This document shows positions 995-53,512 of a stretch of DNA of 64,000 nucleotides, piece by piece. The stretch is from Antechinus flavipes (lineage: Eukaryota). Position 1 is the stretch's first letter. Every line of letters starts with the position of its first letter. The DNA is taken from NCBI RefSeq assembly GCF_016432865.1, contig NC_067400.1:624216001-624280000 (forward strand), read 5' to 3'. The translations under genes and the position numbers were made by a program. The notes beneath the pieces were generated by a model. That model had not been told where the DNA came from. It saw only the letters and a list, made by a program, of their open reading frames with translations, and made no database searches.

Positions 995-3900
995 TCACAC
1001 TGGTGGGGTCTGGAGGTAATGCAGCTGGAGTTGGGGCCAGGCCAGAGGCCTGGAGGAGACCAGGACCAGGAAAGAGAGCAGCAGCAGCAGGAACAGGAGG
1101 CCCAGGATGGGAGGCTGGGCCCCTGAAAAGCTGGGAGTCCTGGGGAAAAACAGACACAGCCAGAGGAAATAGGCTGGGGGCTGTCCTGCCCGCGCCCAGG
1201 CTGGAAGCCCAAAGGAGCCTACCTGTGTCTCGGGGCAGCCAAGGGGAGAGGGTAGATCTGTCCCCAGCCTGTCCTCCTCTCGGCCGAAACCAGTTGGCTC
1301 ATTACAGGCTCCGAGGCCTGATGGACAGCGGGCTCGCTGGGGCTGCTGGGAGCAAAGGAAGCCGAGGGCACCCTCAGCACCCAGACAGGGAGCTGGCCCG
1401 CCGGCCATTTGGCCCGGGAGAGAGACAGAGAGAAGGCAGAGAGACACGTGGCCAGACCCAGAGGCCAGGTCTCGGCCCCGGCCAGCGCCCTCCCCACCAA
1501 AGCGGCCCAGCCTGCCCCCCACTGCTGGGCTTCCTCACCTCCCAGCATCAGGGCAGGTCCTATCGTCAGGCTGCGGTCCCCAGAGGGCGGTTGGGTGTCC
1601 GGCCTGAGGGAGCAAAGGGGCTGACCTGAGGTACAGCGTCTAAAGGGCCGCTCAGATGAGTCACCCTGGAGCCATCACCAGCCGGTCACAGCCAGGAGCC
1701 CCAAAGTAACTGGGGCAGTCACAGAGTTGTCATCTTCCACCAGGGCCCCCGGCTCCCACATCCAAAGCTTTTCTCTTGCCTTCAGTTCCCAGTTTTCAAG
1801 TCCTGAGCGTTCCCCCTCCAAGTCTCCTGCCTCCATTTCTTTTTCACCTCCACATGTCTGGCTTTCATGACCCTTCCCTCCCTGTTCCCATAGCCCCTTC
1901 CCTGCGACAGGCCCTAATCATCTTCCCCAGGTGTAGCCCCAAAAGGCTCCTTAGCTCTGCTCTCAGCAGATTTATTCTTTGCACTGGTAACTTGGGAGAT
2001 GTGGGGTGCAAAGAACCTCAAAGCTAGAATCCATCTCCCTCCTTTAACAAGGAAATGGAGGCCAGAGATCACATGAAGGGGAGGCACTTGACGTGGGGAT
2101 GCAGCCAAGAAGCACTGCCCCCAGACCCTTTTTCCCCTAAGCCGCATGACCGGTCCCAGCTCTCAGAATCCTATTCACAGGCTGACTAAAGCCCTAACGC
2201 CCACCGAGTCAGGTCACAGAGCTCGGCCCTCCCCCAATCCTGCAGGCTGCGGGCCATCAAAGCTCTCTCTGGGCCTGGGCTCCCCAATCTCTGGGCCTTG
2301 GATTCCCCAATCTCTGGAATTGGGCTCCCCAGTCTCTGGGCCTTGGATTCCCCAATCTCTGGGCTTGGGCTCCTCAGTCTCTGGGCCTGAGCTCCCCAAT
2401 CTCTGGGCCTTGGATTCCCCAATCTCTGGGCCTGGGCTCCCCAATGTCTGGGCCTGGGCTCCCCAATGTCTGGGCCTGGGCTCCCCAATCTCTGGGCCTA
2501 AGCTCCCCAATCTCTGGGTCTGGGCTCCCCAATCTCTGGGCCTGGGCTCCCCAGTCTCTGGGCCTTGGATCCCCCAATCTCTGGAATTGGGCTCCCCAAT
2601 CTCTGGGCCTTGGATTCCCCAGTCTCTGGGTCTGGGCTCCCCAATCTCTGGGCCTGGGCTCCCCAATCTCTGGGCCTGGGCTCCCCAATCTCTGGGCCTT
2701 TGCTCACACATCGCACTGTTCCCTGTGCTCAGAGCGCCTCCCTCTCCTCCCTGCCTGCCAAATGCCTTCCCACCAGTTCTTACAGATGGGGAAATGGAGG
2801 CACTGACTAGGGAATGGGCTTGGCCTGCAGATGCAGAGCTCTGCTCTTTCTGCCCCACACTGCTGTTTCCTTCAGGGCCCCATTTTGCTCTTCTGGTGGT
2901 CTTGTTGCCCCCCGGCCTCGCCTGTCCCTTCCGCCGCCCTCCCCACTCGCCCTCCGACGCACAAGTGCTGAAGGGAGGCTTGCCCTGACCCCTCCTGGAA
3001 GCTCCCCAGGGCAGGGATCGTGCCCATCTGGACTCTGCTTCTCCCCCAGCAGCCCCACTATGTCTTGTGGAAGCTGAGCCGGGGCCTCGCCCCACGTCTG
3101 CCAACCACAGCTAGCCCTGGGCCTGCCGCTGCCTTCCACAGCCGGGGACCCTTCCACCATCTCCTGTAACCTGGCTCTGCAGAAGGGGAAACTGAGGCTC
3201 CCACAAGGGAAAGCCCGGCATTCCCCACAAAGCAGGAGGGCCGGGAGCCAGCCTTCCGCAGCCTGTGGCGCTGGGCCCTTCCTCCGTGTGTCCAGGCCCT
3301 GCCGGGGGGCCGGGAGCGCTGGGGCTGCCCGCCTGCCTTCCACGGCCTGACACGGCCGGACGTACCCCAGGCTCCTGTGTGTGCGTGCGTGTCCGCGGGC
3401 TCCCCAGGGACCAGACTCGCCTCCCACAAGCCTCCAGGTTTCTTCAGGCTCATTAGAGGAATTGAGTGGCTTATTATGCAGCCCTCCGCNNNNNNNNNNN
3501 NNNNNNNNNNNNNNNNNNNNNNNNNNNNNNNNNNNNNNNNNNNNNNNNNNNNNNNNNNNNNNNNNNNNNNNNNNNNNNNNNNNNNNNNNNNNNNNNNNNN
3601 NNNNNNNNNNNNNNNNNNNNNNNNNNNNNNNNNNNNNNNNNNNNNNNNNNNNNNNNNNNNNNNNNNNNNNNNNNNNNNNNNNNNNNNNNNNNNNNNNNNN
3701 NNNNNNNNNNNNNNNNNNNNNNNNNNNGCACAAAAACGAGTCCATCTGTGCAGTCATTGGCAAGAGAAGGGCTGGGGCTTCCATACCGCATCTTGGGGCT
3801 TCGTCCCCGTCTCGTCGGCTCTTTGACCGTCCCTCTCGAGTGACCTGGGAGGAGGACTTAAGGTCAGCCCCTCGTTCCCTGCTGTCCCCAGCCTGACAGG

Positions 3901-19099: not shown

Positions 19100-20400
19100 C
19101 CTCTCTCCCGGGAGGTCTTAGGGTACCCGGCTCCCCTTCTCTCTGACAGTCACGGTGAAGAGCTCGCCCCTTGAAGTTTGGGCTTCGACAACTGGCGGGA
19201 AGCCGGGGGCCGGTGCCGGGCGCCGCGCCTTTTCCCGCCAGAATCAGCAGGCCTAGGGCGTAGAAGCGGCGGCCGTCGTGGGTACGCATGCGCCTTGCGT
19301 TCACTGTGGCCCTGCCCCTCGGGCGCCCCGCTCTCGAGGCAGGGCGCAGGCGCCGGACTAGAACAACCGTTGCCAAGGTATGCGCATGCGTCGCGGCCAA
19401 AGTTTCGCGTCTGCGCAGAGACCCTCCTCCCTCCCGGTCCTATTCCGGGGCGGGCGAGCGCTGAGCTGGGCGGTTTGCGGCAGTCCCTTTCATCACCCCT
19501 TCCCTCCCCCTCCCCCTCCCTCCAGCCGGGTCTTGGTGGGCCCCAGCCTTTCCAGGGATGCTTTAGAACGCGCCAGGGAGAGTCGGGGGAGGCTTGACTG
19601 CTACGCTCAGCCGCCCCCGAAGCAGGAGCAGCGGCCCCTCCCTCCAGGAGGTGGGGGCGGGGGGCTCCCTACTCTTGGGTACCCACGTTGCCCGGGGTCC
19701 TCCATGGAAAACCCAAGCGTTGAATAAAAGTCGCCACCACGCCCCCTTTAGCGAAGAGCTCAGGCACTCCCGATCTCCCCCGGGCGTCCTGGCTTTTCCC
19801 GATTCAGCCCAGATTGCCTCCGTAAGCCGCCCACTCCTCTCTGCAGCTCCCCAGAACGCCCGGGGGGAGCAGCTCCGTCCGCCGCCTTCTGCTCCCCGAG
19901 CCGCACGAGCTGGGGAAGGAAGCTGGGGTGCAGGGTGGGAGCGGTCCCGGGACGCCGAGCGCGCGCCCTCCGGAGCTCCCACAGGGCTGCCGGCGCCCCC
20001 CCCCCCCCCCCGGGACGTGGAGAGGCTCGCTTATGCCCCGCCCCCCAAACGGAGCGATGGAGAGTCCGCTTGGGGGCACCGAACCTCCGACTGCCGGGAG
20101 AGGCGCGCCCAGTGCCTCCAGGGCGCGGTTAAGCTTTCCATCTCTCCGGACAGCTGTGTTCTATTTTAGCCAACGGCTGAGCGAGGCAATTGTCCGCGGA
20201 AGAGCGGACCAGCTTGGCCCGGCACGGATCGGGAACGCGGGGGCGGGGCCCGCGGGAGGCCGCCGGCGGGGGCGGGGGGAGCTGCGGGAGCTAGCCGTGA
20301 GCAGCACCTGGCGGCCCAGCCTGTTCGGGCGCTCCCAACAGCCGCTCCCGGCCACCCCACCCCCGGCAGGCGGCAAACTCGTTCTGGGAAGGGACAAGAG
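19100..20400. promoter_or_regulatory. CpG island, probable KASH5 promoter
   Basis: CpG-dense. Motifs: E2F6-type GGCGGGAA at 19194-19201 and 19232-19239 (inverted), NRF1-like at 19283-19293 and 19381-19390, MYB-like CAACCGTTG at 19364-19372, RFX-like GTTGCCAAGGTAT at 19369-19381. It lies upstream of KASH5 on the minus strand. Confidence 0.65.
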
Positions 20401-20942
20401 GCTCCCAGCCTGGCTGTGCTGGAGCCGTGGCAGCTGGCCCACGGAAGATCCTCTCAAGATTCCGTGTCTACGGGGCTCCCTTTTGCAAGATTGGCAAAAC
20501 GCTTTTCCAGTTCGGTGACAGGGCACGTTTGGGAGAGACGCAGGGAAGGCAGGGGCCAGTCAGGGCTGAAAAACAAATGCCTTTTCCTCCTTTTGGCTCC
20601 TTTGGGTTACAACTTTCTAACCCTGAATCTATGGGGGGGAACGAATTTCCCATCAACACCAGACACAAACAAAAAACCAGGCTCTTAGAAAGGGGCCTCT
20701 CTGACTGGTGGTTTAAAGCCTGTGGCTCTTCTGGCATGACACCGGTACCAACGAGGAAACAAGCAGAAAGCACTGGGGGGAGGTGGAAGCCAAGTCTCCA
20801 TTCCTAAGCCCAGAGCTTTCTTTCCTGGTCTGCAGTGAGCCCGGGGAGAGACGCGGCACAGAGAAGCCACAAAGGAAAGCCTTGCGCAGTCAGAGCCTGG
20901 CCGCAGATGAAGCCTCGATGCCATTTTCATTGAGGACAGAAC

Positions 20943-20948
20943 TTTATT
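20943..20948 (-). terminator. DKKL1 polyadenylation signal
   Basis: AATAAA on - about 90 nt after the DKKL1 stop. Confidence 0.85.
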
Positions 20949-21039
20949 TATTTCCAAGGGGACTGAGGGACTGATGCAAGCATCCTCACCTCTCATCTCT
21001 GCTACTGCCCTCAGCCTGCCTCTCTGCCAACCCCGGGGC

Positions 21040-23030
21040 CTACAGCTGCCGGGGGGGCCTCAGGAGGTAGAGGAAATGGGCCCGGCGAGGCGCAGAGCGA
21101 AGGCGCAAGGGGACCTCCTCGTGGGCTCCCTCCCGAAGCCCATCCCGGATAGCCTGAAGCCGATGACGTTTCTCACTGAGCCAGCGGCTTCCAGCCCTGC
21201 TCTCGCCCCGGGCCAACTGATGGGGCAGCCTGACAATCCAGAAGGACACTTTGGGCTGGGTATCGCCGTGGAAGCCGCTCAGTCCAGTGCTAGGGAGAGT
21301 CTGGGATGGCTCATTCTCTTCGTCCTCGGGCACCTAGAATCACAGAACCACAAGGTCTCTGACTTCAAAGGGACTTCTCTACCTGAGCAGGAATCCTCCA
21401 AGACATCATCCTGAAAAATGGACACTGAGCCTTTGGCTGGAGACTTCCTGGCGCGGTGAACTCACTACCTTTGTGGCTAACTCTTAACTTCCTCCTTCCC
21501 TGTCCCCTTCTCCTGTCACCGACTGCTCCTGGGCCCACCAGCCAGCAGCATTCATGGCGAGAGGGCCCACGTTTCTTGGAAGCCTTGGCCTTGGACTTGA
21601 TCTCGCTTCACTCTTCCACAGGAAGAGGTCCCCTGTCCCTTTCCCTCCTGCCTCACTCCATTTCTTTCCGGCTCATCCCGGCTTACAGAAGCAAGGACAA
21701 AGGGGAAGAGCAGCAGGAACTTGTTTCTTGGTCTTGCTCTCCTGTGCTCAAAGGCAGCGGTTCAGTCCCCCCCAATCCCCGAGCCCCCGGCCCCCTTTCA
21801 TCCTCTTAATCCTTGGAAGGGTCCAACACTGAAATGTACTGGGCAATAGAAATGTCTCTGACCTTCCAGTCATCCTCCACATTCCCTTCTGAAGGCTCAA
21901 TTGCAGCCACCACCTTCTCTGAAATCATTACATCTCCGGTCCGATTATCCGTCACCTGTGTGGGTACGTGTAGAGTATTGGGGGACAGCAGAATGAACCC
22001 CACTCCCGGCACCGTCGAGTTTCTTTCTCAGCTGTTGCCGGTATTGGGGATGCGGCAAAGACAGAATCCAACAGATTTGGGCCAGAGATGGTTGGCTGAC
22101 TAGAGGCAGGGACATGGAACTGGGAGGCTGAGAAGGTCAAGGAGGCTGACCTTGTCTATCTGGTGGTGGCTGTAGACAGTGCTGTTACCCAAGTGGCGTT
22201 GTTTCTGGTCCTCATTATGGTAATTGGCTGGGAGGCTTCTAAAATCCACCGAAGGTGACATGAGGCTGTCCACACCCTGAAGCAGATCCTCCTGAGAGAG
22301 CCCCGGTCAAGCGGAAAGGAAGCCGGAAAGCCAACGGTGGGGAGGAAGGGAATCCAGAAAGGAATATGGGGAAGGGGTGTAAGCCACTCAATCCCTCATG
22401 AGCTCCTCCTCCCATGCTCCCTCTTCCAAACTCCGGCCTTTCTGCCGCCTCCCTACCCAGTCCTTCCTGTCTTCCCCCTCTCTCTATTTCTGAGCCTCAG
22501 GCCCTCGCTCCTCCCATCTCTATCTCCCTTCCCTACCGGCCCCAGTCTCCTTTGTATCATCGTTAAGTTTCTCCTGACCAAGTCATTTTTGTTCTGTGCC
22601 CCCTCTTCTCGCCTCCCACTTTTCGTCCTCCAGCCCCCATCGCTTTCCCTCATCCCTGCCTCATGATTTTGCCCAGCATCCCTCCAGACCCATGCCTTTG
22701 TCCTCCTGCTCCCCCGTCCCACCCTTCCCTCGGTTTCGGACCCTGTCAGAGCCGGCGCTTGTCGCCCGGCTGGCCGCTGGGCCGGGCTCTGTCCCCCTGC
22801 CGGCGGCCCCCAAGGCTCACCCGAAGCAGGAGGCGGTTGAGGCTGCGGAGGAGGCTGTGGATACCCAGCAGGCCCATGGAACCCAGCTCCGGGCCCTCGG
22901 AAGCGTCGGGACCCCCGGGGGCGTGGCTGTGTCCGTGGATACGCTCCGGGACGGAGACGGGAGCAGCTCGGTCCTCGGGGGTAGCTGCCAGGAGCAGGAG
23001 CAGCAGCAGCAGCGGGGGCTGCGGCCACAT
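21040..23030 (-). CDS. DKKL1: DKKL1 (soggy), about 245 aa secreted protein
   Basis: Exons: 22821-23030 (MWPQPPLLLLLLLLAA signal peptide...SLLRSLNRLLLR), 22151-22291 (DLLQGVDSL...NYHNE...LGNST...QIDK), 21863-21955 (VTDNRTGDVMISEKVVAAIEPSEG), 21040-21333 (FWIVRLP...WLSEKRHRLQAIRDGL...HFLYLLRPPRQL*). All junctions are phase 0 GT-AG. Confidence 0.95.
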
Positions 23031-23700
23031 GGCGGGGCGGGGCCTGAGCGTGGGACAGGGGCGGAGGTCAGAAGCCCCGCCTCCGCAAGCAGGCCCCCGC
23101 CCCTCCCCAGGCGAGACCCCTTCTCTTTCCCAACCGCGTATGTCTCCGGGGCCTCGGCCCCTCAAGTGCGAGCGGCCACACAGAGGCGGGCTGCCGACCG
23201 GGAGAACTGCCGCGTCCCGCACAACCGCTCCGGCCCGTGCCGCGCCTCGGGCCCCTCCCCGCCCCGGGGGTCTCAGAGAACTTGCTGCAGGGGACCCCGC
23301 GCTGGGCGCGAGATCTCGATCCCCCACCAGGGCTCGGCTCTGGGCTCTGTCGGGGGTTGGGGGGCGTCCTAAACAACGATGGAGCCCGATCGGACCGGAG
23401 CAGGCCCGGGCCGGCCCTTTAACATCAGGCCCTCCCGAATCTAGGCGCTCCCGCGTCCTCCTAACCCAAGGGCGCCCACCGGCCTCCCGGCCTCCAATCC
23501 AGAGCCTCCTAGAGCCAGATCCTCCAAGACCACCTCCCTGTGCCGCCCCCGCCAGGACCCAAGCTCCCCGGCCGCTGGTCCCGTTGCACCGAAGCCCAGT
23601 CCCTTTAGAGACCCAAGGATTGTGTCCAGCGGTCCGGACTCCCAGCTAGCCCCCCTGGGAGGAACTCGGAGGCCCTGGTCCGTTCCTCTCTCCGTACCCT
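22700..23700. promoter_or_regulatory. CpG island over the DKKL1 5' end (the DKKL1/TEAD2 head-to-head position in human)
   Basis: High CpG density and GC boxes. Position matches by synteny. Confidence 0.6.
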
Positions 23701-28691: not shown

Positions 28692-29485
28692 CGACAGAAA
28701 GGGAATTGGAAAAGGAGAAGGATGAGAAGGAAACAAATTGGGCAGGGGGTTAAAGGGTATTCAAAGGCAGTCAGTGCATGGTGTCCCTGCAGAGGGGAGA
28801 GAGAAAATCGTGGGTGCTTGAGAGTAGAAAAGGAGCAAAGGCAGAAGGACACAACAAAGTGGGGGTCCTAGAATAGAGACAAGAGAGTGGGGGATAAAAT
28901 ACTAGGTCTTCCCAGGGGCAGGGAAAAAAGGAGGGGACAGAATGTTGAGGAACCCAGGAAGAAGATAGAATAGTCCAGAGCGAGAAGATAGGGGTTTGTG
29001 GTGGACACCAAAATCCCTGGGGAAAGAAAAGGAGGCCGGAGGAAAGGACACGGGGGTAGTAGAGGGGAGGTGGTAGGAGGAGGGTTTGGGGGCTCCGACA
29101 TCAGGGCTCCAGGTGGGATGAGACAGGGATGGAGAACGAGAGACCTCGATCGTTAAAGTAGGACACTATTAGTCACCACCTCCGGACTCTGCGTGAATAT
29201 TGTGGAGGGAGGGGGGCTCAAAGACTAAATGCAGGAGAATCCTCGGGAAGGGGCGGGGTGGGACAGAATATTTCTAGGGTGCTCAAGGGAAGGACCTGGT
29301 TGGCCCAAGGAGGGAGAGGACTATTAGGAAACAAGGTGCCAGGGTTCTGGAGGATGAAAGAAATCTGGGAGAAGAGGGCGTTTCGGGAGAGAACTCCAGG
29401 GTCTCCTGGAGGAGAGTGGATGGGATGGGGGGGAGGCAGAGCTCAGGGTCCCGGGTAGGATAAGGTGGTGGCGGGGGGAGGGTGT

Positions 29486-32400
29486 CTAAGAGTATCGCGA
29501 GAGCTTGTTGTAGACGTGATCCAGGTTCCTGCAGAGGAACATCGAGAGCGACATGACCCCGAGCTAGGGAGAGAGGAAGGAGACATGCGTGGGTCAGAGG
29601 CGGAGCTGACAGCGGCTAGGGATAAGGGTGGGGACGGACGGGGTGAGGGCAGAGGCGCAGAGGCCGGCGGGTACAGAAGCAGGGGATCGCCGTCCTGGGG
29701 CTGAGCTGGTCCTTTATTCGCAGCTCGGGGACCCTCCCAGCCGGCAGGCTGACCACAAGAACGACCGCCTGGAGGTCAGACGCTTCCGCGGCAGCCAGCA
29801 CCCCACCACGGTGGGCTGGGACCCCCACGAAGCGCTCCCGAATAGCGTGCCCTGGTTGGACAAGGGCGTCCCTGAACCGCTGTTCCCGACCCCCCCTGAC
29901 GCAGATGTCTCTCCCTCCAGCCCCTGGCAGCGGGAGCCCCAGGCCCGGGCGTGGGGCAGCAGCACCAGCGTCAGCGCCACCGCCACCACCTGCAACGGGA
30001 CACGCGCGTCAGCTCGCCCCCGGGCCTGCTTATCTGCGGGTGCCCGAGCACGTCTGGGCACAGGGGAGAAGGGCCGCCTTCCCGCCCACGGCTCGGCTGG
30101 CTCCCACCGTGACCAATCGCGATGCAGCGCTCTTGCCCCGCCCCGCCCACTCCCCTTCCCCAAGTTAGTGCCGGGCTCCGGCTTCCACCGAGCTGGCGGG
30201 GAAGGGCTCGGAGCAGCGCCCCCGGAGCCGGCCGGGGAGGGGCCGCTTTGTTACTGACCTGCATCGGGGCTGGGGTTCATCTGACCGCAGCTGACTGAGG
30301 GAGGGACCCCCCCGGCCCCCCATCTTTGATCAATCTGGGAATGCCCCCGCTAAGAGAGAATGGGTATGCTCGAGCTGCCCCGGCTAAATCGCCCGGCGTC
30401 CCTCGCCCAGAGGCAGAGGGGGAGTGGCCGCCGTCCGGTCCCGCTCTTGCTGGGAGCCATCAGGGCGGACCTGGGACGGAGCGGGAAGGCTTTGGTGGAG
30501 AGGAGACTTTGCGAGAGAGAGGACACTGGGAAAAGGTCCCCCCGGCGCGAGAAAGTGGCTTGGCTTGAGCCCCTTCTGGAGACGGGAGGCGGGGGGAGAT
30601 GGGGGGGCAGAGAGGCTGGGGGAGGGGAGGAGGAGGAGTGGGTACCCAGGCGTCCCTGGTGACTGGCTCCTCACCTCGAGCAGCCCCAGGCCCAGGCTGA
30701 CGCCCACGATGGAGATGAGGTTGTTGTGCAGCCACGTGAAGATGCTCCGAGAGCAGCCCTGCGGGAGCCGGGCCAGGGAGTCAGGGAGCTCGGGCTAGCT
30801 CCGTCCTCCCCTGGGTACCAAGCCCATCCCTCCGACCCCCGGCAGCGCCCCCTCGCCCCCTCCCCCCCAGCCCTCACCTCCTGGTAGACTCCGCTGTCTG
30901 CTGACGTCAAGCAGAGCTCGCCCGAACGCAGGCGGGCCGGGGTTCCGGGGCTGCCCACGCGGGGCAGGATCACGGCCATGCCCGGGGCAGAGACCGCGGT
31001 GGCCCTGGCCCCGGGCGCCGCGGCAGGCGGGCTGGCTCTCGGGGAGTCCCCAAGGCCCTGGGATGTGATCATCACCGAAGTGTTCTGGCAGGAGCAGGGC
31101 ACGCGCTGAAGCGGCCCAGGCGGCTGCGCCGACGGCTCCAGGTCGCCCCTCGGGGTGGAGGAGAAGGTGGAGCCCCTTCCGCTGCTGCCGCTGAGGGAGG
31201 AGATGTTGAACTCGAGGGAGGGTGCCCGCAGCCAGTCCTGGGGAGAGGTCCAGCCGCAGCAGCGAAGCTGGAGACAGGCCCGAGTCAAGGAGGGAAAGAG
31301 AAGCTCCTCAGGGAGCCTCCCGGGGGACCAGGGGCGCCCGCGGCAGCTCTCGGGCCACAGGAACAGTGGGTTTGGAGGGGCGGGATAGGGTGGTGGGGGC
31401 TGTGGGGGGACAGATGGGGAAACGGGGCTCCCACCTGGAACTGCACAAAATCCCAGTTCTCAGCGGTGCTGTACGTGTCCGGGTACTTGTGGTAATTGTC
31501 GATTACGTCCAGCACGATGTCCTTCACCTTGCGCTCCAGCTGAGCCCGAGAAGGGGGGGAAGAGACACAGACCGTATCTTTGCTTTCCGGATCTGGGGGA
31601 TCTGGGCTCTCCCTCAGCTCTGTCTCCCCTCCTCAGTCTCACTGGCCTCTCAAGTCCCCCAATCTGCTTCTTTATCCCATAGCATTCTTTTTCTGCTCCC
31701 CACCCCCACGGGGCGCTTCTTGGCTACTTCCCCTCCCCCGCTGTGCCCCCTTTTCTGTGTCTGTCTCTGCACTGGCTCCTTTCTAGGGGCTGCCTCTGCC
31801 TCGACTCCTTTCCGGGCCTAGCCCCTTCCTTTCCTCCTGCCGGTTTTCCCCTGGCCAGGGCTCCTCTCTCTCACTTAGTCTCTAGCTCCCCGATTTTGTC
31901 GTTGCTGCTGTCCTTTTGCTCTGTTTTTTAAATTTCCCCCAGGGTTCACTCACCAGGCCGTGTTGGGTGTAGATGAGGACTCCTACTGTGATCTGGGTAG
32001 CAAGCAGGAGCAGCAGAAGACCAAAGTACTAGGGAAAGGGGGCAGAATTAGGACCTCCATCTAGGCCTCGGGAAAGGGGGCTGGGAGAAGAAGGGGAGAG
32101 CCCTAGAGCAGCTCGGGCGGTTGGAAGGTCCCTAAGGAGACATGAATGAAGACATGGGGACTAGGGGACCATCCAAGAGGGAGGGTCTCAGGGGATTTTC
32201 AGGGGCGTGTCCAGCTTGTGGCGTCCCAGGGAATATTGGAGGATCACTCACAAGGCCAAGGAGGCAGCGGATCTCTTTGATGGCTCCAAGGCAGCCAAGG
32301 AGGGACAGGAGGCCAGTGAGAACCCCCGAGGTGGCGAGCACGTAGGACCATACCTTCAGCGGTGTAAAGGACAGGCCTGCAAAACACCCCCAGGATAGTT

Positions 32401-32884
32401 GGGGGGAGGGAGGTGAAGACAAAGCCTGGATGAGGCTCACAGAAGGGCCACAGCCGGAATCCAAACGCCCTCTTTTGGTAAGCGGGGAAATGGACTCAGG
32501 AAGAGAAATATACTTGATTCTGGGCAGACAGGAAGCTTCTAATTCACCCCCCCACCGCTGCTCTAGGGCCCCGAGGAAGATGTCCCTGGGTGGGGGCTCA
32601 AAGTTAAGGGCTAAGACAGTCAGGATTGAGTTAGAGATTCCCTCACCCAGGAAGGAGGCAAAGCTGTTCTTGTCGATGAGAATCCAGAGACCAAAGCAGA
32701 AGACAAGGCTGCCCAGGACCTGAGGAGGCAGGGAGGGTTGAGTCGGGGACCAGACATGGCTGCAGGACGGTGTGGGCGGGGTGGGGGTGGGAGCAGGGGT
32801 TGGGGTGGTTTAACTCACGAAGAAGAAGACGTTGAAGACAAAAAGGAAATATTTGATGAGGCTGAGACAGCCCTTATCCACCAT
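29486..32884 (-). CDS. CD37: CD37 tetraspanin, canonical form about 331 aa
   Basis: Exons: 32819-32884 (MVDKGCLSLIKYFLFVFNVFFF), 32647-32719, 32252-32376 (LLGCLGAIKEIRCLLGL), 31954-32028, 31435-31539 (WDFVQFQ), 30878-31267 (LRCCGW...RVPCSC...LC), 30675-30758 (GC...WLHNNLISIVG), 29486-29563 (FLCRNLDHVYNKLSRYS*). Phases are consistent. Confidence 0.97.
29714..29989 (-). CDS. Candidate alternative terminal exon of CD37 (91 aa)
   Basis: Branch point CTGAC and acceptor gtcccgttgcag. Phase 0 matches the donor at 30675. It begins with hydrophobic VVAVALTLVLL, and the stop TAA overlaps AATAAA (29713-29718). Confidence 0.55.
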   Translation of the reverse strand: MVAVALTLVLLPHARAWGSRCQGLEGETSASGGVGNSGSGTPLSNQGTLFGSASWGSQPTVVGCWLPRKRLTSRRSFLWSACRLGGSPSCE

Positions 32885-33450: not shown

Positions 33451-34419
33451 ACAACGTAAAAAAAGAATTCTGGGGTTTGGTTTTTGGACAGAAGGAGGAA
33501 GCACTATGAACTGAGGGAAATGGGAAAGAGCTCTTGTAGCACTTGAATCTTGAATCCACTCCAAAGTGAAACAATTGAAATAGCCTTTGATTTTCTAGGG
33601 CCTTCAGGCTCTCCATTTCTTCTCTCCCTTTTGCCCTGCCTAAGACCTCTCATGGCTCCCCTCTGACTCTAGGGCCGTTTTCTCTCCCCAGCCTGCATTC
33701 CAGTCTGTTTGAGTTCTCTTTCCTGAACTAATTTTCCCCATCTTCTCCACTCTAACTACAAGAAGGTTCTCTTTCTGTGTTCTGGTCTTTCCCCACTACG
33801 CCTGTGCATTCACATTGCAGGTCTATGGCTGTAGCCTCTGAGGTCTCCGTGCTCTGACCAATGGACAGAATCTCCATGTTGGTAAGAACAAGATTCCCTG
33901 AGGAGGGAAGGGATTCCCTGAAGAGATTCCCTCTAGAGGGAAGAAGTTTGGAAAGAGGAGTGCTGATTCTGTAGTCCTGAGGACTTGGCTTCAAAGCCTG
34001 CCTCAGATTCTTGCTTCTAGTGTGAGCCTGGCCAAGTCACTTTAGCTCTCTTGGTCTCAATACTCTCTTCCCCACAATTCTCATGATTTTTCATGCTGTG
34101 ATCTTTCTTCAACCCCCCAACTCTAGCATAGCTTCCTTCAGGAAGCCTTTCCTGATCCCTCAGCCCAGGGCACCTCTCATCAGATTGTCCCAAAGCCTTA
34201 GCTTTGGCCCCTTTGCTGCAAGGAATAGCGCTCTCAGAGCTTACAATCTAGTGAGGGAAACGTGAGCAGAAATGAGCTCGGTGCTTTATAAAATAGCCGG
34301 TGCTGAATGTGGAAGGGAGAGAGAGGCTGAGAGAGGGAGAAAGGGAGGCCATCAGAGGGAGATTCCCAAAGAGGAAGCAGCCGCAGTCCCCCTCCTCCCA
34401 GCTTCGCAACAAACACAAA

Positions 34420-35840
34420 TACAGCAACAGATCCAGACTCACACACAGACACAGACACAGGTACAGACACCGACACAGATATAGCAACAGACCCAAAGTC
34501 ACACACAGACACAGACACAGACCCAGATACATCAACAAACACAAATACAGCAACAGACCCAGATTCTCACACATAGACACAGACACAGGTACAGACACCG
34601 ACACAGATATAGCAACAGACTCAGACTCACACACAGACACAGACACAGACACAGGTACAGACACCGACACAGATATAGCAACAGACCCAAAGTCACACAC
34701 AGACACAGACACAGACCCAGATACATCAACAAACACAAATACAGCAACAGACCCAGATTCTCACACATAGACACAGACACAGGTACAGACACCGACACAG
34801 ATATAGCAACAGACTCAGACTCACACACAGACACAGACACAGACACAGGTACAGACACCGACACAGATATAGCAACAGACCCAAACTCACTCACAGGCAC
34901 TGACACAGACACAGGTACAGACACTGACACAGATATAGCAACAGACCCAAACTCACACACAGACACACACACAGACACAGGTACAGACACCGACACAGAT
35001 ATAGCAACAGACTCAGACTCACACACAGACACAGACACAGGTACAGATATAGCAACAGACTCAAACTCACACACAGACACAGACACAGACACAGGTACAG
35101 ACACCGACACAGATATAGCAACAGACCCAAACTCACTCATAGGCACTGACACAGATATAGCAACAGACCCAAAGTCACACACAGACACACACACAGACCC
35201 AGATACATCAACAAACACAAATACAGCAACAGACCCAGATTCTCACCCAGACACAGACACAGGTACAGACACCGACACAGATATGGCAACAGACTCAGAC
35301 TCACACACGGACACAGACACAGACACAGGTACAGACACCGACACAGATATAGCAACAGACCCAAACTCACTCATAGGCACTGACACAGATATAGCAACAG
35401 ACCCAAAGTCACACACAGACACAGACACAGACACAGACCCAGATACATCAACAAACACAAATACAGCAACAGACCCAGATTCTCACCCAGCCACAGAAAC
35501 AGGTACAGACACCGACACAGATATAGACACACAGCACGGATATACAGACAGATATAGACACAGACAGAGACAGACATAGACATCGATGCATCATAGATAC
35601 AGGACATAAAACACACACACATACATATAGACGCAGATGCAGACACGCACACACATATACAAAAACAGACCCACAGACACAGATACCGATAGACACAGAT
35701 ACACTGACATAGGTACAGACACAAGACACAGATTCAGGCACATAGACACAGATATGGACAGAGTCACAGACAAACACACAGAGACACAGATATGGATAGA
35801 CACACAGACCCAGACCGATCACAGACACAGGTACACACAC
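34420..35840. repeat. (ACAGAC)n-derived compound repeat with higher-order units; UG-rich on the minus strand
   Basis: acacagacacagac runs alternate with atatagcaacagacccaaa blocks. Minus frames are broken by stops. Confidence 0.95.
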
Positions 35841-53329: not shown

Positions 53330-53512
53330 NNNNNNNNNNNNNNNNNNNNNNNNNNNNNNNNNNNNNNNNNNNNNNNNNNNNNNNNNNNNNNNNNNNNNNN
53401 NNNNNNNNNNNNNNNNNNNNNNNNNNNNNNNNNNNNNNNNNNNNNNNNNNNNNNNNNNNNNNNNNNNNNNNNNNNNNNNNNNNNNNNNNNNNNNNNNNNN
53501 NNNNNNNNNNNN
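53330..53512. other. Assembly gap (N run)
   Basis: N bases. Confidence 1.

Follow-up and report, generated by a model that had tools for sequence, protein, structure and literature searches.

CD37 is a tetraspanin of B cells and a target for drugs and for chimeric antigen receptor T cells (CAR-T), and its short cytoplasmic tails are thought to bear signalling motifs. In the class of skipped alternative terminal exons, a weak proximal acceptor and an intronic polyadenylation (poly(A)) signal of the exon's own are set against a strong distal last exon. A stretch of DNA from Antechinus flavipes (64,000 nucleotides (nt), contig NC_067400.1, positions 624,216,001 to 624,280,000; hereafter the window, whose own numbering is used below) contains CD37 on the minus strand, and the last intron of this gene holds an open frame that is probably a genuine, ancient alternative terminal exon. 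It resembles the class of skipped terminal exons in having a weak acceptor and its own poly(A) signal within the intron. It differs from them in that its body is conserved at synonymous positions too, and it is known here from sequence.

The CD37 isoforms given in PMC6773723 are NM_001774 and NM_001040031 only. These curated variants differ in the N-terminal part, owing to alternative splicing within exon 1. UniProt isoforms 1-3 of CD37 were tested in PMC11228397. At the C-terminus, a tyrosine motif resembling the immunoreceptor tyrosine-based activation motif (ITAM) has been linked to PI3K-delta/AKT pro-survival signalling in a review of CD37 (PMC7765243), where splicing goes unmentioned. A literature search found no CD37 variant, curated or published, with this alternative last exon, and a search on CD37 together with "intronic polyadenylation" gave no match. 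The Antechinus exon is similar to the isoforms of PMC6773723 insofar as alternative processing of a tetraspanin gene would alter a terminal region.

Counterparts of the exon are present among predicted proteins. The first protein search led to XP_068959493.1, the CD37 isoform X2 of the sugar glider (Petaurus), which continues after ...GLGLLE with VAAVGLTLVLLPHTRAWGSR...STCRLEPQSCE and is 52% identical to the Antechinus tail; translation of the alternative exon at the Petaurus genomic locus gives the annotated long-isoform tail. Marsupial models with the long tail comprise this record and XP_068959492.1 (X1, 401 amino acids (aa)) in Petaurus, XP_072463464.1 and XP_072463467.1 (X2 and X5, the X5 record with 401 aa) in Notamacropus eugenii, XP_056652701.1 and XP_056652702.1 (X1 and X2) in Monodelphis domestica, and XP_074075873.1 and XP_074075875.1 (X1 and X3) in Macrotis lagotis. 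The long tail also occurs in predicted CD37 isoforms of platypus and echidna, and in eutherian models of 366-409 aa from panda, stoat, elephant, pig, camel, rabbit, marmot, Mus caroli and Mus musculus (X1, XP_006540655.1, and X2). All of these records, which were found by cluster listings and whole-protein search, are XP or automatic models.

The Antechinus exon shares with the RefSeq long isoforms its position in the last intron, a phase-0 junction after ...GLLE, a start of the form V-x-A-x-G/A-L-T/S-L and the W/G/C/P motifs. The marsupial long isoforms, Antechinus included, also end in a common ...C-E stop. Identity to the Antechinus tail is 53% for Monodelphis and 26-33% for eutherians, while eutherian tails are 64-70% identical among themselves. 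Therian tails can be aligned through the hydrophobic start and a common motif, W-G-x-A-x-x-C-x-x-W-G...L-P...G-x-W, and this motif stays in frame despite several indels between marsupials and eutherians. Marsupials, eutherians and probably monotremes have all preserved the frame. The tails are not uniform in length or charge: those of eutherians have 112-125 aa with an acidic end and are acidic in net charge, whereas those of marsupials and monotremes are net basic, and dasyurid tails lack five codons. Judged by sequence and position, the Antechinus exon is the ortholog of the last exon in the predicted long CD37 isoforms of many mammals.

In the Antechinus sequence, exon 7 ends in ...CTGCTCGAG at 30675 and is followed by a gtgagg donor, whose gt (30674-30673) is common to both last exons. 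The motif CTGAC occupies 30012-30008, which places the branch A at 30009, 20 nt ahead of the alternative exon. The acceptor cccgttgcag ends at 29990, with no AG between it and the branch A. The exon encodes VVAVALTLVLLPHARAWGSRCQ...RKRLTSRRS...SPSCE, with RKRLTSRRS near the end, and its TAA stop (29716-29714) lies inside the AATAAA hexamer at 29718-29713. This hexamer is the sole AATAAA or ATTAAA from 30674 to about 28964. The first-pass annotation, made from the Antechinus sequence alone, had described a CTGAC branch point, a ttgcag acceptor, a frame in phase with the upstream donor, a tail with RKRLTSRRS and a stop within AATAAA; each of these is present on the minus strand as described.

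The exon was compared across the CD37 loci of seven australidelphians (Antechinus, Sminthopsis, Sarcophilus, koala, Trichosurus, Petaurus and Dromiciops). All seven retain the acceptor, an open frame that ends at the same stop, and the AATAAA; CTGAC is retained too, reading CTGAT in Trichosurus. No stop or frameshift interrupts the frame in any of these genomes, which bears out the conservation that the first-pass annotation had proposed to check. K distances, taken between Antechinus and the four non-dasyurids, are 0-0.05 for the 22 nt of the acceptor and 0.02-0.07 for the 45 nt after AATAAA, equal to the conservation of canonical exons 7 and 8 (0-0.08). The body of the exon lies at 0.19-0.21, exon 6 at 0.25-0.29 and the introns at 0.3-0.5. 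Indels are scarce as well. The alternative exon has three (3, 15 and 3 nt) against 24 expected, an 8-fold deficit (P about 8e-8), and the length of each is divisible by three (P about 0.015). As a baseline, 2991 nt of non-coding gene alignment contain 262 gap events, 25% of them multiples of three. In the same alignment the indels of exon 6 behave like those of the alternative exon. In these alignments the conservation of the exon across species is far beyond chance, and the reading frame itself is protected.

Against a genuine terminal exon stand observations from annotation, from codon tests and from RNA. RefSeq annotates no such exon in Antechinus, Sarcophilus, Sminthopsis, koala, Trichosurus or Dromiciops, and both Antechinus models, X1 and X2, end in the canonical tail. 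In the mouse, the long forms are XP models found on one contig versus 391 for the canonical protein, and the curated isoforms have 303, 278 and 281 aa. The exon is thus unannotated in Antechinus yet not new, because the tail ends RefSeq models of four other marsupials and of many other mammals.

Within the single sequence, 14 of the 70 intronic AGs precede at least 91 open codons, both strands have long open reading frames (ORFs) in several frames, and two other frames are open across the exon. The pyrimidine tract amounts to 61% at the alternative acceptor versus 94% at the acceptor of exon 8. The 91-codon frame on its own is weak evidence and lies within chance; the single-sequence signal that does count is the poly(A) hexamer, which stands alone in the interval from the donor to about 28964. 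The ORF counts, together with the lack of the junction in RNA contigs described below, speak for a frame that is open by chance because the intron is GC-rich, in which the AG and the AATAAA are fortuitous and without function. That explanation is effectively refuted by the cross-species conservation, and is now hardly credible: conservation of sequence, frame, acceptor and poly(A) signal extends over seven genomes and more than 20 annotated species, with 8-fold fewer indels than expected.

The codon tests, which cover the DNA of the seven australidelphian genomes, show no codon signature. The minimum numbers of changes at first, second and third positions are 45/31/32 in the alternative exon, where third positions are not the most changed, as opposed to 57/46/79 in exon 6 and 29/11/75 in the other exons. 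Pairwise NG86 estimates of omega, the ratio of nonsynonymous to synonymous rates (dN/dS), are 0.5-1.7 for the alternative exon, 0.35-0.53 for exon 6 and 0.09-0.23 for the other exons, with dS of 0.14-0.23, 0.22-0.55 and 0.18-0.37, respectively. Maximum-likelihood omega on the species tree (F1X4/F3X4) is 0.93/0.69 for the alternative exon, values that do not differ from 1 (p 0.74 and 0.10) and lie above 0.3 (p below 1e-4). For exon 6, which served as a control, it is 0.42/0.34 and below 1 (p 1e-8 to 1e-12). The alternative exon read in its shifted frames gives 0.86 and 1.31. The dN/dS comparison across marsupials that had been suggested at the outset therefore does not reveal purifying selection on the tail at the amino acid level, and the tail peptide is not detectably under selection in marsupials. 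At each of the three codon positions the body of the exon changes roughly half as fast as neutral sequence, and this equal slowing points to nucleotide-level or overlapping constraints.

A pattern of this kind suits the main rival explanation, namely a conserved non-coding element in which the open frame is incidental and the tail has no protein function. The element might be an intragenic promoter or enhancer of the CpG-island type, or a poly(A) site within the intron by which CD37 output is adjusted. Besides the equal slowing of the three codon positions, a dS of 0.14-0.23 versus 0.26-0.55 in canonical exons and an omega of about 1, the composition agrees with it: positions 29600-31400 are CpG-island-like, with a GC content of 0.67-0.74 and an observed/expected CpG ratio of 0.6-0.86. 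An E-box (CAGGTG) is conserved at the acceptor, as are an inverted CCAAT and GC boxes. Frame +2 and antisense frame 2 are also open in six of the seven species, and the RNA coverage of one dasyurid run (X4, see below), which lacks exons 1-7, fits an independent transcript or enriched DNA. However, all three indels are multiples of three and the frame is kept across therians and probably monotremes despite several indels, the conserved signals are exactly a branch point with its AG and an AATAAA with its downstream element, and gene models made independently for many species join exon 7 to the alternative exon. As the sole explanation a non-coding element is therefore unlikely. It can coexist with an alternative exon, because both constraints could overlap. 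The main targets of selection appear to be the processing signals and the reading frame rather than the residues of the tail.

Structured RNA was looked for in the same region. Rfam 15 covariance models had no match in 29300-30800 at E values up to 1. Around the AATAAA, RNAalifold allows a GAGCTG/CAGCTC hairpin; the sequences are too invariant, and a covariation term of +0.29 gives the hairpin no support.

The RNA data consist of assembled contigs from four runs of related dasyurids. Runs X7, X12 and X10 are 90-95% like the window; their bases are consistent with Sarcophilus or a close dasyurine, as is a gap of 6 nt in exon 6. Run X4 carries Sminthopsis-specific bases. All seven canonical joints are present in the contigs of X7, X12 and X10. 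The junction from 30675 to 29989, which the first-pass annotation had proposed to look for, was seen in none of the contigs of the four runs (contigs drop rare variants), where only the canonical 30675|29563 joint occurs, and the canonical junction dominates in dasyurid RNA. An X10 contig (29686-30094, depth 7) and an X4 contig (29250-30020) are unspliced across the alternative acceptor, and an X12 contig (29536-29981, depth 13) runs through the poly(A) site and the acceptor of exon 8. Contigs over the candidate exon reach 2-4% of exon depth. This looks like the level of pre-mRNA, because other introns have similar depth (in X12, 31999-32281 at depth 18 and 32348-32675 at depth 11). The X10 contig ends at 29686, which is 27 nt past the hexamer and the expected cleavage spot; a contig end in itself proves nothing.

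Run X4 covers 29250-30020, 30253-30313 and 30427-30588 at a depth of about 20, which takes in exon 8, the last intron and some of the 3' untranslated region, without CD37 exons 1-7. Given that the upstream exons are missing, this coverage fits an independent transcript (intragenic CpG island) or enriched DNA. It may be asked whether the region belongs to a separate transcription unit, either a transcript from an intronic promoter or a read-through from CD37 into DKKL1. A Sarcophilus model (UniRef A0A7N4P022) fuses CD37 exon 7 to a DKKL1-like C-terminus (VTDNRTGDVMISEK...LLRPPRQL), and the loci of the dunnart (20222-22183) and the devil (21453-23423) contain a gene of 245 aa that shares the strand of CD37 and follows it at a distance of 6-8 kb downstream, which together suggest that CD37-DKKL1 read-through transcripts exist. 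The fusion nevertheless skips the alternative exon, an ATG at the start of the exon is found in koala only, RefSeq models place the exon in CD37, and the contigs give neither strand nor ends. A separate unit is accordingly quite improbable as an account of the exon. A role as the signal-peptide first exon of DKKL1 was also considered and was rejected, given the koala-only ATG and the lack of a conserved donor.

A genuine terminal exon of CD37 remains the preferred reading. The earlier proposal of an alternative last exon holds for the exon, frame, acceptor and poly(A) signal, which are conserved and orthologous to predicted models; the junction was not seen in the dasyurid contigs. The shared donor at 30674 could pair either with the proximal, weak acceptor at 29990 or with the distal, strong acceptor of exon 8 at 29564. 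Use of the proximal acceptor would be coupled to cleavage about 15-30 nt past the AATAAA. The product would be an mRNA for a four-span CD37 in which the fourth transmembrane helix (TM4) is finished by VVAVALTLVLL, and the 14-residue tail with its ITAM-like tyrosines would be replaced by a tail of about 80 residues, rich in Gly, Ser and Trp and probably disordered. We infer that the exon is spliced and polyadenylated in Antechinus. The dasyurid contigs suggest low-level use, with the long-tail form as a minor isoform.

The two C-termini have exon 7 and its donor in common, and in both TM4 is completed by the last exon (LGVMSLSMFLC in the canonical form). The alternative TM4 would be ISIVGVSLGLGLLE+VVAVALTLVLL. 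Its best 19-residue Kyte-Doolittle window, ISIVGVSLGLGLLEVVAVALTLVLL, has a mean of 2.39 versus 2.08 for the canonical helix, which makes the alternative TM4 the more hydrophobic. Judged by hydropathy, the fourth helix of the four-span tetraspanin topology (PF00335) is complete, and the proposal that VVAVALTLVLL completes TM4 is feasible. An AlphaFold model of the Petaurus X1 ortholog (19 sequences, mean predicted local distance difference test score 44) has one helix, 273-326, passing through the exon junction, with the rest unstructured; the continuity of this modelled helix may be taken as a weak hint in the same direction.

Beyond TM4 the tails differ. The canonical tail extends for 14 residues, with two tyrosines, and is near-invariant (K 0-0.07), whereas the alternative tail has about 80 residues, no conserved tyrosine and an omega of about 1. 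Among species, the alternative tails contain 18-32% Gly and Ser, four to seven Trp, and none to two Tyr at no conserved position. The absence of tyrosine noted in the first-pass annotation is true of Antechinus and does not extend across species, since several relatives have one Tyr; tyrosine is present in the tails of Sarcophilus, Sminthopsis, koala, Petaurus, Dromiciops and others. A Pfam scan of three tails gave no match. The ITAM-like motif would be missing from the alternative tail; the rewired signalling proposed in the first-pass annotation is conjecture.

A swap of the C-terminal tail would alter signalling while leaving extracellular epitopes unchanged. A more far-reaching version of this idea is a functional pan-mammalian isoform, more than 160 million years old, which without the ITAM-like motif opposes or modulates CD37 signalling or trafficking, and whose exon has a second, nucleotide-level function, for example as an intragenic CpG-island regulatory element or in the control of splicing and polyadenylation. 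Such a second function would explain why synonymous sites are constrained as much as non-synonymous ones. This version as a whole is doubtful and is put forward as speculation. In Antechinus the result is an ordinary one, an unannotated ortholog of an exon present in the RefSeq models of related species. Given that the exon is conserved across mammals and that no study of it was found, it would be a reasonable target for a study of expression and function.

The coordinates of the exon and of the canonical gene are collected in Table 1. The translation of exon 6 is 100% identical to XP_051845737.1 (CD37 isoform X1 of A. flavipes), and the eight canonical coding exons, when joined, give the 331-aa XP_051845738.1. 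A peak of conservation at 28674-28625 is further evidence for the canonical 3' end.

Table 1. Features of the CD37 locus in the window, with the evidence for each
Feature	Position	Strand	Basis or remark
Alternative last exon, coding part	29714..29989	-	91 codons + TAA, phase 0, in phase with exon 7
Branch point CTGAC and acceptor gcgcgtgtcccgttgcag	29990..30012	-	sequence, conservation
First 11 codons VVAVALTLVLL, which would complete TM4	29957..29989	-	hydropathy
AATAAA poly(A) signal containing the stop codon	29713..29718	-	motif scan, invariant in 7 species
About 45 nt past the hexamer (CTGCTTCTGT), likely cleavage region and downstream element	29669..29712	-	near-invariant, K 0.02-0.07
Conserved intronic block ahead of the acceptor, possible regulatory element	30012..30119	-	K 0.28-0.33 vs 0.41-0.48 for the 5' part of the intron
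CD37 coding exons 1-4	32884-32819, 32719-32647, 32376-32252, 32028-31954	-	translation
CD37 coding exons 5-8	31539-31435, 31267-30878, 30758-30675, 29563-29486	-	translation
Last CD37 intron	30674-29564	-	1111 nt
CD37 exon 7 (first half of TM4, ends ...GLGLLE)	30675..30758	-	sequence, translation, RNA-contig joints 30757/30877 and 29563/30675
Canonical exon 8, coding part (LGVMSLSMFLCRNLDHVYNKLSRYS*)	29486..29563	-	translation; joint 29563/30675 at depth 360-380 in runs X7 and X12
Canonical CD37 3'-end signals, two AATAAA	28691-28686 and 28666-28661	-	motif scan

Within the intronic block ahead of the acceptor are GC boxes and, at 30118-30113, the inverted CCAAT GATTGG. Sminthopsis either lacks this block or has other sequence in its place. 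In the X4 contig, 99 other letters replace 30020-30253. The diprotodont version of the block carries a GGAAGATGGCC-like site.

Exon 6 of marsupial CD37 (30878-31267) encodes an insert in the large extracellular loop, about 50 residues long and with much Pro, Ser, Gly and Ala; CD37 has 331 aa in marsupials versus 281 aa in eutherians. Evolution of the insert is fast (omega 0.34-0.42), yet the frame is kept, and four of its four indels are multiples of three. The Petaurus X2 model lacks the part of exon 6 with the CCG motif. Other models of the gene vary elsewhere: the Trichosurus X2 model skips exon 7, the Dromiciops X1 model retains the last intron, and one metaclust model reads the alternative exon in frame +2 through the AATAAA into exon 8. 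Acidic N-terminal extensions are present in the CD37 models of wallaby, opossum and bilby. Upstream of CD37, at 34400-35200, lies a long tandem array with units of about 60 nt (ctgtgtctgtgtgtgag...ttgctatatctgtgtc...), and the window holds two runs of N, at 3490-3727 and 53330-53512.

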